Notes under the pieces: generated by a model
What the model saw: the letters and a program-made list of their open reading frames with translations, nothing else
The model's database searches: none
What the model was told of the DNA's origin: nothing
Position numbers and translations under genes: made by a program
In this document: piece after piece, positions 3,128 to 8,253 of the stretch
Layout: the number at the start of each line of letters is the position of its first letter
How positions within the stretch are numbered: position 1 is the stretch's first letter
NCBI GenBank assembly: GCA_013416795.1
Contig: RQSC01000154.1
Coordinates: 120,035-128,287 of the forward strand
Reading direction: 5' to 3'
From: Prasinococcaceae sp. CCMP 1430
Lineage: Eukaryota; Plantae; Prasinodermophyta
Length of the DNA stretch: 8,253 bases

Positions 3128-3298
3128 AGGGGGAGGGCACAGCGCGCGCTGTCGGCGCGCGCGTGCGGGGCGACCCGCGCGCTGGAGGCGGGGCGGCCTT
3201 TCCCGCGCGAGCGGCTTGCGCCTGGCACCACCCCCAGCCCCAACGGGACACGGCAAAGTTCAAGCCCCGCGCGGCGGCCTCGGTGGGGGGCGGCGGCG

Positions 3299-6200
3299 AT
3301 GGGCGACTCGGCGCGCGAGCTGCGCGTGGCGATCAAGGCGGTGGAGACCTCTGACGCGCAGCGCTACTACCTGCGCGTCTCCGCCGAGGGCGAGCACCCC
3401 GCGCTGCAGGCCGCCGCGGCGGGCGGCGCGGGCGTGCTCGCGGCGCTCACCGACGTGAGCGATGTGAACGCGCGGCCGCAGTTCGGCAACAACGTGCTGC
3501 ACCTCACGCTGCCGGGGGGCGTGCTCAGCGCGAGGTCGGAGCTGCTGGACGCCGCGGCGTTCTCGCTGCGCTGGCGGCTGTACACGCTCGCGCCGGCCAT
3601 ACCGGCGGGCGGCGGCGGTGAGGCGCTCGCAGCGAGCGGCGAGTGGCGCGTCGAGCCTGGTGACGCGGCAGTGTTGCTGCGCGGCGACCCGCGCGACGTC
3701 AAGGTGAGCCTGCTCCCAGAGGCGCTTAACGGCGTCGCGGGCGACGTCGCCTTCCAGGCATGCTTCGTGGACGCCATGGCAGTTGCAGCCGGCGGCTCGG
3801 CCGGGCAGGCGTTCGGCCTCGGCGCGCGTGTGCGCTCGAAAAAGGTGCCCGTCAAGGTGCGCGTGTGGGTCGCGTGCGCGACGGGCGTTCCCAAGGCCGC
3901 GGCCGCAGGCGGCGGCGTCTTCGTGGCCGCCAAGACCTCGCGCGAGGCAGCGCTCCGCAAAGCGTCCAAGCAGCGCACGGCGGCCGCCGGTGGCGACTCG
4001 GGCAACTGTCACTGGAACGAGGTTCTCGAGCTCGAGATGTTCGACGCCGACCTTGACAAGGAGCGTGTGCTCCTCGCACTTGTGGACGCGGACTCCAAGC
4101 AGCTCGTCGCCAAGTGCGCCGTGCCCATGCTGCACCTCGTGCCGCGGCGAGCCTATCCGCTCAAGCTTGTCCTGGACGAGGCCGCGGGCACCGCCCTGTA
4201 CCTGAGCGTGACGATCGGCGAGGCGCCGCGGCGAGAGGCGACTATCCTGCAGGCTGCGCCCATTCAGCGCGCGCGGGTCGAGGTGTCCCTCCTGGAAGCG
4301 CTCCCCCCTGCAGCGGGCGTCCGCGCCCGAGAGGCGCTGGAGCTGGGCGCGTCGGTGGTCGCGGTGGCTAGGATCGAGCAGGGCGGAGCGGCGGCGCAGC
4401 AGGCCGCCTGGGCTGGCCCGCTGCTGGCGCCCGACAAGCTCTTCACGCGCGTCAATGTTGGCAGCGGCAGGTCTGACGCCTGGGATGTGGTCGCCGACAT
4501 GGACCACAACTCGGATGGCGCTGGTCCGGAATTGATGCCGTTGCTCGCGCCGGACATGTCCTCGCAGCTGTGGAAGGGCAGGCCCCCACAGCCGCTCACG
4601 CTCGCCCCGCCGGCGACAAGCCTCGTCGGCGCTGACGCCGCGCTTTCAATCGAGCTGCATGTGGTGGCAGCGGTATCTGGGGTGGCTGCGGGCAGTGCGG
4701 GTGCGAGGGCAACGCCGAGCGCGAGCGCGCCGCACCAGGCTGCGCCCGCGTCGGCAGCCGAGCCAGCGCAAAAGAGCACCCCTGCGGACGAGCCTGCCGA
4801 AGAGCCTGCGAGCGAGCCTGCGGACGAGTCTGAGGGAAAGCCTGCCCCCGAGGCCCCACCGGCTGAGGGGGTGAAGAGCCTCGACGGGCCGCCGATGCCC
4901 ACTGAGGAGTCAATTGGTATGGAGAAGGCCAGTCCTACGAAGCAGGATGCGCCGGGGACTGTTCCCTCCAAAGAGGGAGAGGAGGCGGCGGCACCGCCAA
5001 CGCCAAAGCAGCCCGCTGCACAGGCGCCCGAGGCAGGAGGCGGCGGCAGTGGCAGCGGCGGCAGTGACACTTTCCTCGGTGGCTTGCGAGTGCCGCTCAA
5101 GGGACTCGTGGCTGCCAAGGCCGGCGAGCCATACGACCTTCGTAAGGCGCACCTCCTAGGCGGAGCGGGTGGCACGCTGACGATGCAAGTTCGCCACTGG
5201 GACGACGAGTCGCTCATGCAGAACGTCCTGTCGGATGCGGCGGATGGCGCGGGCACCATCACCTTGACGGGCGCCACGCTGCAGCTTGCTGAGGACGTGA
5301 AGGCCAAGCAGGTGCTGGTGGAGCGAATGATCATCCAGGGAATGGAGCGAGACGCGCTGGCGGCAGCAGCTGCGCACTCTCGCGACGTGTCGGCGGTGGC
5401 GCAGCAGGAGCTTGCGGACGAGCTGGCGGCCACGCAGCAGGCCCTCGCGGACGAGCGCGAGGCAGGCCGGGCGACGCCCACGCTCGAGGGGGTAGAGAAT
5501 CTGACCTGGCCGGAGCTGCGCGAGCGCGCCGAGCAGCTCGCGCTTCGCCATGGGCGCGAGCAGCGCCACAACCAGGAGCTGGTCGCGAGGGTGCACCGTA
5601 TGCATCGCGCGGCCGTCGAGCACAAGGCTGAAAGCAAGAAGTACAAGGAGTTGCAAGAGGCGCATGCGCAGCAAGGCCGCGTGGTGGCCAGGCTGGAGAG
5701 GGAGGCGGGCACCGCACGCAAGTGCCGCGAGACCATCACCAGCCAGGAGAGGGTGATCGCGAGACTCGAGTCTCTGCTTGAGGAGTCTGCGGGCGACTCT
5801 GATGCCCTAAGCGCGGCGCGGGCCGAGTCGAGGGCACTCGCGGAGGACCTGTCTGCCATGCGGCGCGAGCGGGACGGGCTGTTTGAGGAGGTGGCGCGCG
5901 CAAAGAGTGACGCCTCAGCACAGTTGGAGCGGCTGCGATCAGACAGCGGCGTGGTCGAGCTGGAGACTGCGAACAGAGAGAAGGCAGCGGAGCTTGCTGC
6001 AGTCCGCGAGGCGAGCAAGGCCGCTGACGAGAACTCGAAGAAGCTCGAGGAGGAGAAGATGGCCATGATGATGCGATGTGAGATCGCCGAGGCGCGCGCG
6101 GTGGCCTCGTCGAATGAGCTCGTGGAGGCCACGCAGCGCTACGCCAAGGAGATCAGCGTGCTCAAAGCCAAGCTCGCAGAGAAAGAGGCGCAGCTCATGG

Positions 6201-6412
6201 GCGGGTTTGGCTCTCTCGCAAACCTCGCGCTCGGCGAGATGCCGCGAGTAGTGCCTTTTCCGAGAGGCTCGACGCCGCCCGGGCGCAAGAGCCCGGGCGC
6301 GCTGAAGCCCCTCGACGGCGCTGACGCCAAGCCCACGCCGCCGTCGACGCGCAAGCCGGCGGGCAGGGCTGGGGGGCGCGGTGCGGCCGCTCGCGCGCGC
6401 CGCGGCGGCTGA
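3299..6412 (+). CDS. CCDC33: CCDC33-like protein (~1037 aa): three C2-like domains followed by a long coiled coil; no intron evident
   Basis: Segments match human CCDC33 as recalled: RYYLRVSAE (RYALRLSAE), ALTDV (AITDV), LHLTLPGG (FIFTLPKG), VRVWVACATGVP (VTLHGATNLP), HWNEVLELE...ERVLLALVD...VPMLHL...YPLKLV (IWGDTVNVE...EDVILKVVD...IPIKYL...YHFELV), ETITSQERVIARLESLLEE (ETVRHQEKVIEKMERVLED), ATQRYAKEISVLKAKLAEKE ([20 protein letters not shown]). ATG 3299 is chosen because homology begins just after it; the upstream open frame (2507-3298) is simple-repeat-rich and not protein-like. Stop TGA at 6410-6412. Confidence 0.82.
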   Translation: MGDSARELRVAIKAVETSDAQRYYLRVSAEGEHPALQAAAAGGAGVLAALTDVSDVNARPQFGNNVLHLTLPGGVLSARSELLDAAAFSLRWRLYTLAPAIPAGGGGEALAASGEWRVEPGDAAVLLRGDPRDVKVSLLPEALNGVAGDVAFQACFVDAMAVAAGGSAGQAFGLGARVRSKKVPVKVRVWVACATGVPKAAAAGGGVFVAAKTSREAALRKASKQRTAAAGGDSGNCHWNEVLELEMFDADLDKERVLLALVDADSKQLVAKCAVPMLHLVPRRAYPLKLVLDEAAGTALYLSVTIGEAPRREATILQAAPIQRARVEVSLLEALPPAAGVRAREALELGASVVAVARIEQGGAAAQQAAWAGPLLAPDKLFTRVNVGSGRSDAWDVVADMDHNSDGAGPELMPLLAPDMSSQLWKGRPPQPLTLAPPATSLVGADAALSIELHVVAAVSGVAAGSAGARATPSASAPHQAAPASAAEPAQKSTPADEPAEEPASEPADESEGKPAPEAPPAEGVKSLDGPPMPTEESIGMEKASPTKQDAPGTVPSKEGEEAAAPPTPKQPAAQAPEAGGGGSGSGGSDTFLGGLRVPLKGLVAAKAGEPYDLRKAHLLGGAGGTLTMQVRHWDDESLMQNVLSDAADGAGTITLTGATLQLAEDVKAKQVLVERMIIQGMERDALAAAAAHSRDVSAVAQQELADELAATQQALADEREAGRATPTLEGVENLTWPELRERAEQLALRHGREQRHNQELVARVHRMHRAAVEHKAESKKYKELQEAHAQQGRVVARLEREAGTARKCRETITSQERVIARLESLLEESAGDSDALSAARAESRALAEDLSAMRRERDGLFEEVARAKSDASAQLERLRSDSGVVELETANREKAAELAAVREASKAADENSKKLEEEKMAMMMRCEIAEARAVASSNELVEATQRYAKEISVLKAKLAEKEAQLMGGFGSLANLALGEMPRVVPFPRGSTPPGRKSPGALKPLDGADAKPTPPSTRKPAGRAGGRGAAARARRGG

Positions 6413-6454: not shown

Positions 6455-6585
6455 ATGCATTCTCATCCTCGCGCTTTGTCGTATGTGTGCATCGGCTTGC
6501 GCCACTAGCGACTGGGCGTGCTGTGTGCATCACTGGACCACAGGGCACGCCAGCTCGTCCGGCTCTGTGAGAGCGCATCGAGCAA

Positions 6586-7617
6586 CTAGTGCAACAACCG
6601 TGACCCGCCCGTGGCAGTCGCAGCCATCGCCGCGATTGTGCGCCGCCGCGACGGCGGCGGTGGAACGTCGTCCATCACATCGTCCACCTGCTGCTCCGCC
6701 TCGCTTTCCCCGGCAGAGTCATCGCTCCGCATGAAGGTGGGCGGTAGCCCTGCCAGCACCCTCTGTAACGCCGCGATGTAATTTGTGTTCTCGACGTACT
6801 CAAGCCCGGCCGCGCTCGCAGCGCGTAGCACCTCGTCGGGATCGACAGCCTCGACGCACACCGTAGACAACTCCATCGGCGGCTGGGACTGATCCTTGCA
6901 ATGGTAGTAGTCTTCCACTGTGACGGCAGATACTTCAGCCAGGGTGCCATCCGAAGAGTCGCTCAGGGCTCCGACGACCCGCTCCTTGCGGACGTCAATC
7001 GCGTGTAGCAGTGGATGCGACGCAATCATCTCCATGAAATCAGACTGTCTGTACTCCCCGCTCCCCAGCAGCGAGTCGGGGGCCGTGACGCCGAGGCAAC
7101 GCTCGAAAACGTTTTGCAGCGTGGCACCAGCTGCGGGGAAGGCTACGACACCGAAGGGCTCCCAGAGCTCGAGAGACTGGATGCCGAAGGGATGGACGTA
7201 TCCCCCTTCGTCTTCACCGCCACTTAGGCGTTGCTTGATGTCGATTGTGCCCCCGCGCACCTTCACGTTGTAATCGGTCCTGAAATTGCCGAAGATGTAC
7301 GTCTCGCGAGTGCATCTGGGTACACCATGACCAGCAGCTGCCGTCGCGCCTTGACGTTCTATCTCCTCGGCAAGGGAGCTTTCCGCTGCAGCCACCACTG
7401 CCGCCACTGGCGGGGGCGGCGGGCCGGAGCTCAGGTCGGGCTCGCTGCTGCACACGCGAAACGCGCGAAACTCGTACCTTGGCTGCGTTGCTGGGTGCGC
7501 CGCGGCCCTGCTATGCGGCGCCGCGGCCGCCCGCGGCCGCCGCCTGCCGCGCCTGCAGCCAGCGCCGGCGGCACGCTCAGCACTGCACACCACCCGCAGC
7601 GCCGCCTGCGCCGCCAT
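6586..7617 (-). CDS. CYTH/triphosphate-tunnel-metalloenzyme-like protein of an uncharacterised bacterial-type family (~343 aa) with an N-terminal transit-peptide-like extension
   Basis: Ordered motifs PRYEFRAF, ETYIF, NVKVRGGTIDIK, LELWEPFGVVAFP, IDVRKER, AEVSAV, TVCVEAVD..V, GL..VENTNYIAAL parallel a bacterial family recalled as PRWEWRTF, ExYxL, NVKVRDxLMDIK, LEQWEPVMKxxFP, VxVHKRR, AExTxV, TIAVESED..V, GL...NxxYxxGL. Start chosen at GCAAAATGG (7617) for its good context and Ala/Arg-rich leader; an in-frame ATG also exists at 7767. Stop TAG at 6588-6586. The gene itself is well supported; the fold call is from memory. Confidence 0.72.
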   Translation of the reverse strand: MAAQAALRVVCSAERAAGAGCRRGRRRPRAAAAPHSRAAAHPATQPRYEFRAFRVCSSEPDLSSGPPPPPVAAVVAAAESSLAEEIERQGATAAAGHGVPRCTRETYIFGNFRTDYNVKVRGGTIDIKQRLSGGEDEGGYVHPFGIQSLELWEPFGVVAFPAAGATLQNVFERCLGVTAPDSLLGSGEYRQSDFMEMIASHPLLHAIDVRKERVVGALSDSSDGTLAEVSAVTVEDYYHCKDQSQPPMELSTVCVEAVDPDEVLRAASAAGLEYVENTNYIAALQRVLAGLPPTFMRSDDSAGESEAEQQVDDVMDDVPPPPSRRRTIAAMAATATGGSRLLH

Positions 7618-7792
7618 TTTGCGGGCTTGCGGACTCCGGAGCCGTGGCCGGGCCCTGACCACGAGCCTCCCCTCCTCCCACCCCTCGACGCCCGCTTGCT
7701 CGCGCGCGTGTGCCCCTCCCCTTCCCCCCTCCCCACCCACCCCACCACCACCCCTCTCCCCTCCCATGATCCCATCACCCCTCGCCCCTCGT

Positions 7793-7844
7793 GCGCCCCT
7801 GCACCTACCCCTGCTCCCGCGCCCCTGCACTCCCCCCCTGCTCC
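7793..7844. repeat. Two-copy ~26-bp tandem repeat within a C-rich(+)/G-rich(-) tract
   Basis: GCGCCCCTGCACCTACCCCTGCTCCC (7793-7818) is followed by GCGCCCCTGCACTCCCCCCCTGCTCC (7819-7844). Confidence 0.8.
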
Positions 7845-7926
7845 GCGCTGCCGCATTTGCGTACTGCGGAGGCCGCCGCGGGTGCGGGCGCGCGCCCCTT
7901 CGCGAACGGTCCCAGGAATCGTTGGG

Positions 7927-8003
7927 CTGCGGACTGTCAGCAACCTCGCACGGAAAAAAAAAAAAAAAAGACAGACGGAGCGAGACTGAGAGATGACGCG
8001 CAC
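7927..8003 (-). other. Candidate 77-nt spliceosomal intron upstream of gene 3 (5'UTR intron, or intron of a separate minus-strand transcript)
   Basis: The minus strand reads GTGCGCGT...T16...TGCTGACAGTCCGCAG: the same donor hexamer as intron 1, a pyrimidine/poly-T tract, a CTGAC branch point (7940-7936) and a CAG acceptor. There is no transcript evidence. Confidence 0.55.
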
Positions 8004-8253
8004 AGGGTTTGGGTTGGGGTGTTGGGGTTTTTTGTAGGAATACGCGCCCGAATGCTGCAGAGCAGTGCGCGTACAGTACGAGTACCATCCGGATGGTAGA
8101 AGACTCTTGGGAGGGTTTCATTCTTTATTAGTATATTAAACCCTGAGGATTACGCCCCAAACTTCGAACCCGTGTGGGAGCGACGCGAGAAGCGCGCTCG
8201 GGGCGGGCGCCGCGCCACAGCGCGCGCCCCCCCCCCGCCCCTCGGGCCGGCCG

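Follow-up and report, generated by a model that had tools for sequence, protein, structure and literature searches.

The fold of CYTH proteins and triphosphate tunnel metalloenzymes (TTMs) is ancient and much studied, and to our knowledge it is still unclear where inorganic triphosphate comes from physiologically and what part specific tripolyphosphatases (PPPases) such as NeuTTM play. In TTMs, an ExExK motif lies on strand 1 and an ExE motif on strand 8, and a basic clamp of RxR, K and KxR binds the triphosphate. Of the two ExE glutamates, the first belongs to metal site 1 and is found without exception in characterised TTMs; the second and the glutamates of ExExK make up metal site 2, where water is activated (PMC8233210, PMC4641920). 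In Vtc4p, acidic-patch glutamates are exchanged for basic residues that guide polyphosphate (polyP) (PMC4641920). Arabidopsis TTM1 and TTM2 (AtTTM1/2) lack both ExExK and ExE, and the activity reported for them is that of a pyrophosphatase, not a triphosphatase (PMC8233210). NeuTTM is described as a specific inorganic triphosphatase (PMC3440374). Here we consider an 8253-nucleotide (nt) stretch of contig RQSC01000154.1 from the marine green picoalga Prasinococcaceae sp. CCMP 1430, the whole of which we call the window and which has about 70% G+C. On its minus strand, a single-exon coding sequence (CDS) of 343 amino acids (aa) plus stop, at 6586-7617, encodes a divergent TTM/CYTH-fold protein. 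We use X as a working name for the uncurated PRxExRxF family, comprising its bacterial members and the algal copy. The analysis established the fold, the family, the synteny, the linkage to eukaryotic genes and the residue conservation. We consider it likely that X is a stand-alone divergent TTM-fold protein that passed from a bacterium to the alga and is linked to condensed phosphates.

Fold, family and conserved residues of X

The AlphaFold (AF2) model of the domain, built on the family alignment, has eight main strands plus helices, with a predicted local distance difference test score (pLDDT) of 86.5 and a predicted TM score (pTM) of 0.84; the full-length model reaches a pLDDT of 76.8. The predicted structure is the eight-stranded beta-tunnel that characterises the CYTH-like/TTM superfamily. 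Foldseek returned as best PDB matches, with probability 1.00, ygiF (5a60), thiamine triphosphatase (ThTPase; 3tvl) and CYTH 'adenylate cyclase-like' proteins. VIA-align has CYTH/TTM structures in each of its first 22 places, with Z from 11.3 down to 8.2 and residues about 5-257 of 266 covered; among them are 2een at 11.3, 3tvl at 10.6, 7ns9 at 10.1, 7z67 at 9.9 and 5a60 at 9.6. Further down follow Mediator Med18/20, the triphosphatases of capping enzymes, and Vtc2/4. Compared with the known CYTH/TTM structures NeuTTM (2FBL/3TYP), PH1819 (2EEN), SaTTM (7NS9), ygiF (5A60) and ThTPase (3TVL), the model shares the eight-stranded tunnel and the C-terminal helix (Z 9.6-11.3, with 150-188 residues aligned). 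The alternating charged side chains that face the tunnel interior are shared as well, with KxR on strands 3 and 6, a Lys on strand 4, and a Glu on each of strands 5, 7 and 8. X departs from them in having no sequence-level match, RxExR in place of ExExK, a single strand-8 Glu, and motifs of its own (ETY, WxP..K..FP and NxNY). The tunnel fold that the initial annotation had proposed from the letters is thus borne out by the prediction, and its remark that the protein is unlike standard TTM or VTC4 sequences held in the sequence searches.

The curated databases are silent on this family. Searches with the window protein gave no match in Pfam, NCBIfam, PADLOC or the PDB sequences, and no Pfam, NCBIfam or PADLOC model matched any of 38 homologues. 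PF01928, the CYTH model, did not match the window protein or any of the 38 even at E <= 1, and the family profile found only chance matches among PDB sequences. An hhalign comparison of the X family with the canonical CYTH family encoded beside it in bacteria was non-significant (probability 1.4%). Sequence-level membership in canonical CYTH is therefore rejected on the hhalign result and the missing PF01928 match. A defence-system reading was likewise dropped, PADLOC having no match. Because canonical CYTH co-occurs in the same operon, X is, as judged from sequence, a distinct and uncurated paralogous family beside CYTH. We met no description of it in the literature searched, within the terms chosen.

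An exhaustive HMMER (phmmer) scan of 1.84 billion representatives at E <= 1e-3 returned 71 proteins. One (P0001) is a near-identical (99%) marine metagenome copy on the TARA scaffold L001. The 70 others are about 140-230 aa long, mostly about 200; the best of them has an E of 1.2e-12, and identity to the algal protein is 31-42%. Nothing falls between 99% and about 40-42%. The 90% cluster of the algal protein itself has 23 members, all from marine metagenomes. A word-indexed protein search with the window protein found P0001 only. The same search with a longer, 511-aa open reading frame (ORF) as first row found P0001 and one other (P0129), low-complexity words having probably crowded out candidates. 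Among the 30 nearest Atlas clusters, the bacterial share is 83-100% on the three displayed, and one cluster is auto-named 'putative CYTH domain-containing protein'. The family motifs run in the order PRxExRxF, ETY, NxKIRxGxLDIK, GLEQWxP..K..FP, VxKxR, ExA, T.AVE..DP and NxNY..ALKR, and all of them align between the algal protein and the 70 bacterial-type members. A bacterial family 'starting PRWEWRTF' had been named in the initial annotation; it is real, with the same motifs in the same order.

Conservation was counted over 178 bacterial homologues and is given here in the numbering of the 343-aa algal protein. The window protein has the family residue at 33 of the 41 positions conserved at >= 80%, and it keeps every position conserved at >= 95%, the charged ones among them, so the motif match is not due to chance. 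The basic clamp is retained: K119/R121, K128 and K211/R213, on predicted strands 3, 4 and 6, are conserved at 98-100%, and R121 is invariant (178/178). A local, non-significant hhalign alignment places K211/R213 on K88/R90 of the CYTH partner. The acidic positions E49, E105, D126, E150, E228 and E256 are each conserved at >= 90%. On strand 1 the hallmark ExExK is replaced by R47-Y-E49-F-R51, for which the family counts are R in 171, E in 174 and R in 175 of the 178. Strand 8 carries a lone conserved Glu, E256 (98%), whose register relative to the canonical ExE is ambiguous. At the position two residues past it the alga has Val, and bacteria have T, E or V, with E in 53/178; two residues before it stands C, N or A. 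Site-1-type binding apparatus thus looks intact from the sequence and the acidic patch remodelled. The algal protein is probably functional, because the full residue signature is kept.

Two described systems resemble this arrangement. AtTTM1/2 have the TTM fold (7z67, Z 9.9), a degenerate ExExK/ExE and the basic residues kept (PMC8233210). These plant proteins also contain a kinase domain, a coiled coil and a membrane anchor, whereas X is a single-domain protein with other motifs and bacterial relatives. The Vtc4p tunnel (3G3Q/3G3R; 7YTJ) has a basic residue in place of an acidic-patch Glu (PMC4641920), as X has Arg at the first ExExK Glu. The structural match to Vtc4p is weaker (Z 6.9-7.8), and X is without SPX or a membrane part, keeps several acidic tunnel residues and has bacterial, cytoplasmic relatives. 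A VTC4-type polyP polymerase, which would combine SPX, the tunnel and the VTC membrane region, was considered and rejected: the protein has no other Pfam domain and its flanks are disordered.

Bacterial loci and the origin of the algal gene

To place X in its bacterial context, a degenerate DNA pattern for NxK[IV]RxGx[LM]D[IV]K was used, which gave at least 120 genome loci. An X member is held by 112 of those listed, spanning at least 13 phyla and including 69 from Bacteroidota; neighbours were clustered and representatives named by Pfam. The most frequent neighbour, in 86 of the 112 listed loci, is a 157-aa CYTH protein, lying directly downstream on the same strand in 77 with a median gap of 9 nt. 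This partner does match PF01928 and is close to NeuTTM (2fbl/3typ, E about 1e-23). Among the matches listed, the pairing of X with CYTH recurs in about ten phyla despite the sampling bias. A DASS transporter (Na_sulph_symp/CitMHS) is found in 72 of the listed loci, a lamin-tail-domain (LTD) protein in 62, Porin_O_P in 59, a PHO4-like protein in 30, a phytase-like propeller in 17, MgtC in 15, TctC in 7 and Ppx-GppA, abutting X in Acidobacteriaceae, in 2. Typically the genes run from porin O/P through LTD, the phytase-like gene, X (or, in some loci, an X-X' pair), NeuTTM-like CYTH and DASS to PHO4, MgtC or TctC. Short condensed phosphates, not nucleotides, are the likely ligands to which this context points.

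Nine encoding contigs of relatives were also inspected. X abuts Ppx-GppA, followed by TctCBA, in a Bacillota (P0003), and stands in the order Porin_O_P, LTD, X, CYTH, DASS in a Muribaculaceae (P0099). Elsewhere we found X then CYTH (P0005); MgtC, X, Porin_O_P, CYTH and DASS (P0008); X then DASS with a Na/Pi cotransporter nearby in a Gammaproteobacteria contig (P0017); MgtC, X and a cut ORF (P0006); and phosphoglucomutase, X and a methyltransferase (P0089). The contigs of P0002 and P0026 are too short to inform. A link to Ppx/GppA phosphatases, mentioned in the initial annotation, is also confirmed as a fusion. A cluster of 504-aa Actinomycetota proteins matches the algal model over 202 residues (root-mean-square deviation 2.4, TM 0.68), the extra N-terminal domain of these about 504-aa Ppx/GppA proteins being the X family. 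In P0129, too, the X domain is N-terminal to a Ppx-GppA match. The algal protein, by contrast, has no Ppx/GppA domain, nor does a Ppx gene lie next to it in the window.

Some further components of the bacterial loci may be mentioned. In Bacteroidota and Chlorobiota, tandem paralogues X-X' stand directly upstream of the canonical CYTH, giving three TTM-fold genes in a row; about nine listed loci have them (L068:2414-3739, L088:5997-7286, L059, L085, L054, L042, L124, L090 and L043). The gene for the LTD protein (about 282 aa) immediately precedes X, at a median distance of 80 nt (representative L120:4054-4902, minus strand), and is placed between the phosphate porin and X in nearly all listed Bacteroidota loci. 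A Pfam-less ORF of 487 aa, downstream on the same strand and about 2 kb from X in 22 loci (representative L019:935-2398, minus strand), may represent one more unnamed part of the locus.

The algal gene is embedded among eukaryotic genes. On the independent TARA scaffold L001 it lies beside a Rad51-family gene and the same convergent neighbour as in the window. The stretch or part of it is contained in 20 runs from 17 studies, 16 of which hold at least half of the sampled words. Apart from the near-identical marine copy, all relatives are of about 200 aa and every genomic context sampled for them is bacterial, which agrees with the bacterial derivation that had been suggested. It is most likely that the algal X gene was acquired from a bacterium by horizontal transfer. 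The initial annotation had spoken of a TTM branch used by algae. Among the relatives found, a single algal lineage carries the gene, and the extension to algae in general does not hold. The expected nesting of the algal sequence within a bacterial clade was not recovered either, trees of 68 and 120 rows giving no supported placement, and the donor is therefore left unnamed. G+C at third codon positions (GC3) is 0.74 in the X gene compared with 0.92 and 0.83 in the window's NDK and coiled-coil genes, both described below, and overall G+C dips to 0.61-0.64 across the X domain. The low GC3 is compatible with incomplete amelioration or weak codon bias.

Possible functions and competing explanations

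From these results we infer a substrate, catalysis, targeting and an adaptive role in phosphorus scavenging as follows. Bacterial X would be a cytoplasmic partner in loci for condensed-phosphate acquisition, and in other lineages would act ahead of, or fused to, a Ppx/GppA exopolyphosphatase. After transfer, the nuclear copy amid eukaryotic genes would have acquired a presequence-like N-terminus and a tail, as well as inserts in its loops. In the tunnel, K119/R121, K128, K211/R213 and Glu256 may hold a metal-triphosphate or polyphosphate moiety as in TTM metal site 1. The water-activating patch would be altered, with Arg47 for the first ExExK Glu and Val two residues past Glu256. With the patch so remodelled, X would be expected either to hydrolyse, by an altered chemistry, a short condensed phosphate (pyrophosphate, PPi; tripolyphosphate, PPPi; or a polyP end), or to bind it and pass it to a partner hydrolase. 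We give catalysis by X about even odds, and a role in binding or regulation about one chance in three.

Several observations weigh against this picture. The equivalence of residues to those of canonical TTMs is drawn from motif position and the non-significant local hhalign alignment, not from superposition. Neither ExExK nor ExE is intact, which makes hydrolysis uncertain, and residue 157, in the P..K..FP motif, is Val in the alga where 87% of the family has Lys. The listed bacterial loci are dominated by Bacteroidota (69/112) and were selected by pattern, so their counts are non-independent, and the P0089 lineage has no phosphate-related neighbours. The bacterial partners (NeuTTM-like CYTH, Ppx/GppA and transporters) are absent at the algal locus, in the window as on L001, although for a eukaryotic nuclear gene this absence is expected. 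In the trees of 68 and 120 rows the algal branch is long (1.55-1.62), and no sister group to it is supported. Finally, the runs treated as RNA, from which the transcript evidence given below derives, are RNA by guess only.

The altered patch raises the possibility that X is a non-catalytic pseudo-TTM, a binder or sensor of condensed phosphates or metal-phosphate that regulates or feeds the adjacent hydrolase and that in the alga would be a polyP- or PPPi-binding factor. We regard this as a possible but less probable account. Arg stands for the first ExExK Glu in 171 of 178 sequences, the position two past the strand-8 Glu is mostly Thr or Val, and mutation of the corresponding glutamates cripples AtTTM3 and ygiF (PMC4641920). 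Among the listed loci X is almost always beside a canonical hydrolase, at a median gap of 9 nt, and the X-X' tandems before CYTH in about nine of them suggest hetero-oligomers. The polyP-binding CHAD modules on TTMs (10.1101/567040) supply a precedent. However, six acidic positions conserved at >= 90% next to the basic clamp exceed what simple anion binding needs, and AtTTM1/2, without ExExK/ExE, are still reported pyrophosphatases (PMC8233210). Moreover, the alga has kept X with no adjacent hydrolase.

Nucleotide-linked polyphosphates form another class of conceivable ligand, and X could act on (p)ppGpp, nucleoside triphosphates or thiamine triphosphate, or as a cyclase, with a plastid role in the alga. 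The linkage and fusion to Ppx/GppA would suit such a role, that family including pppGpp phosphohydrolases, as would the presequence-like N-terminus, the stringent-response machinery residing in the plastid. ThTPase and class IV cyclases are among the structural matches. Among the traits of class IV cyclases is a missing second Glu on strand 8 (PMC8233210), and X would share it provided that Glu256 is the first ExE Glu. The dominant bacterial context, however, is that of a phosphate porin, DASS/PHO4, a phytase-like protein and an inorganic PPPase rather than nucleotide metabolism, and the central Arg that is replaced in cyclases is invariant here (R121, 178/178). We therefore consider a nucleotide substrate decidedly unlikely, and the class IV cyclase reading was rejected mainly on that Arg. 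As for origin, the gene might not have been transferred at all, being either an ancient eukaryotic gene lost nearly everywhere else or the product of bacterial contamination or mis-assembly. The long branch with no resolved donor clade makes great age conceivable, and in some Atlas clusters a minority of sequences lack a bacterial label. Yet the 1.84 billion representatives contain no intermediate relative, the other matches being about 200 aa, and the genomic contexts of relatives examined are all bacterial. Contamination is very unlikely because two independent assemblies show the gene amid eukaryotic genes and 16 runs contain at least half of the sampled words; the eukaryote-style additions and high G+C of the gene argue the same way. 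Absence of transfer is accordingly judged highly improbable.

A stand-alone TTM-fold protein of bacterial derivation with a link to condensed phosphates thus continues to be the account that we prefer. It defines an uncurated sister family of CYTH with a remodelled acidic patch (RxExR). That X lies beside NeuTTM-like PPPases, phosphate porins and transporters across phyla, including abundant gut Bacteroidales, points to bacteria that take up condensed phosphates from outside and break them down step by step. In the alga, it would be a clean single-gene bacterial acquisition with eukaryote-style additions, in a lineage adapted to oligotrophic water, and a candidate for polyphosphate or pyrophosphate turnover overlooked by standard annotation. 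A bolder version, which we offer tentatively and think rather unlikely as a whole, is that X is the missing functional partner of the long-enigmatic NeuTTM-type tripolyphosphatases in a widespread bacterial condensed-phosphate utilisation locus with a phosphate porin and DASS/PHO4. It would carry out a new TTM chemistry, as a single-metal pyrophosphatase or polyP-end hydrolase or as a Vtc4-like chain-guiding tunnel, and would have been captured by a deep-branching oligotrophic green alga and retargeted to an organelle to tap polyphosphate or pyrophosphate.

Gene model, domain layout and neighbouring genes

The mechanical ORF on the minus strand, 6586-8121 (511 aa), is longer than the CDS chosen. 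Divergence from the TARA scaffold L001 is 0.29% (3 substitutions) across 6586-7617 and 2.7% in 7618-7767. From 7768 to 8121 it reaches 20% plus indels, so that this portion is hypervariable while the CDS and the 3' region are near-identical. Because divergence is low in 6586-7617 and rises upstream, the start was set at 7617, in a caaaATGGCG context, in preference to upstream ATGs. The upstream portion of the mechanical ORF (7618-8121, minus strand), with its G-rich low complexity, T16 run and divergence from L001, is most likely noncoding, a 5' untranslated region (UTR) or promoter. The T16 run lies at about 7955-7970 on the minus strand and, like the G-rich low-complexity stretch, falls inside 7768-8121.

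Two transcript-like contigs cover the gene, X15 at 6469-7427 and X16 at 6501-7323, both collinear with the genome and free of joints, and two 151-nt pieces of a seawater metatranscriptome match it. That the domain has no intron, as first noted, is borne out by these joint-free contigs and by a protein that aligns end to end with its bacterial homologues. Transcription of the X gene in the alga is probable rather than proven, because the RNA status of the runs is partly guessed. A probable 3' UTR on the minus strand, 6469-6585, is marked by the transcript-like contigs, which end before the stop codon of the convergent neighbour at 6412.

All motifs named in the initial annotation, from PRYEFR to NTNY, are present in the order given on the minus-strand ORF: PRYEFR at 7482, ETY at 7305, NVKVR at 7269, IDIK at 7245, LELWEP at 7173, VRKER at 6993, AEVS at 6939, VCVEA at 6861 and NTNY at 6789. 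Its placement of the domain at residues 46-295 holds as well, since, counted from Met at 7617, PRYEFR starts with residue 46, and the domain runs to about 295. The TTM/CYTH-like tunnel domain, as delimited by the model and conservation, comprises residues 46-291 (6745-7482, minus strand) and carries the signature residues R47, E49, R51, E105, Y107, K119, R121, D126, K128, E150, W152, K211, R213, E228, E256, N277 and Y280. Ahead of it, a 45-aa extension (7483-7617, minus strand) with 16 Ala, 9 Arg and 1 acidic residue is without counterpart in the bacterial homologues, which begin about 5-10 residues ahead of the PRxExR motif. This Ala/Arg-rich N-terminus is presequence-like and possibly an organelle-targeting peptide; residues 1-41 have a pLDDT < 50 in the full-length model.

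Three alga-specific inserts, all on the minus strand, interrupt the domain. Residues 56-73 (7399-7452) form a Pro-rich loop past strand 1 that is a gap in every bacterial row, and both amino-acid differences between the algal protein and the TARA copy fall here (substitutions at 7437 and 7433). The second, residues 134-145 (7183-7218), lies between strands 4 and 5 and is seen in the alignment as well as in a low-pLDDT block. The third, residues 238-248 (6874-6906), lies between strands 7 and 8 in the alignment. The C-terminal tail of 52 aa, residues 292-343 (6589-6744, minus strand), has an acidic stretch, PPPPSRRR and an Ala/Thr-rich end, and no bacterial counterpart. Its pLDDT is < 50 at 303-306 and 319-343, so that both protein ends are modelled as disordered. 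The Pfam scan found no second domain in the window protein.

Converging on the X gene is a coiled-coil-like ORF on the plus strand, 3281-6412, of at least 1043 aa and with a coiled-coil-like C-terminal half; it has no Pfam match. The stop codons of these two genes are about 170 nt apart. Further along, a split gene on the plus strand (exon 1 at 47-334, then about 850-2503) encodes an NDK domain, Dpy-30 and IQ motifs, a radial-spoke-type architecture in an alga reported to be without flagella. This NDK gene ends in a tandem array of about 26 copies of a 21-nt unit (7 aa, Glu/Ala/Pro) at 1883-2500.

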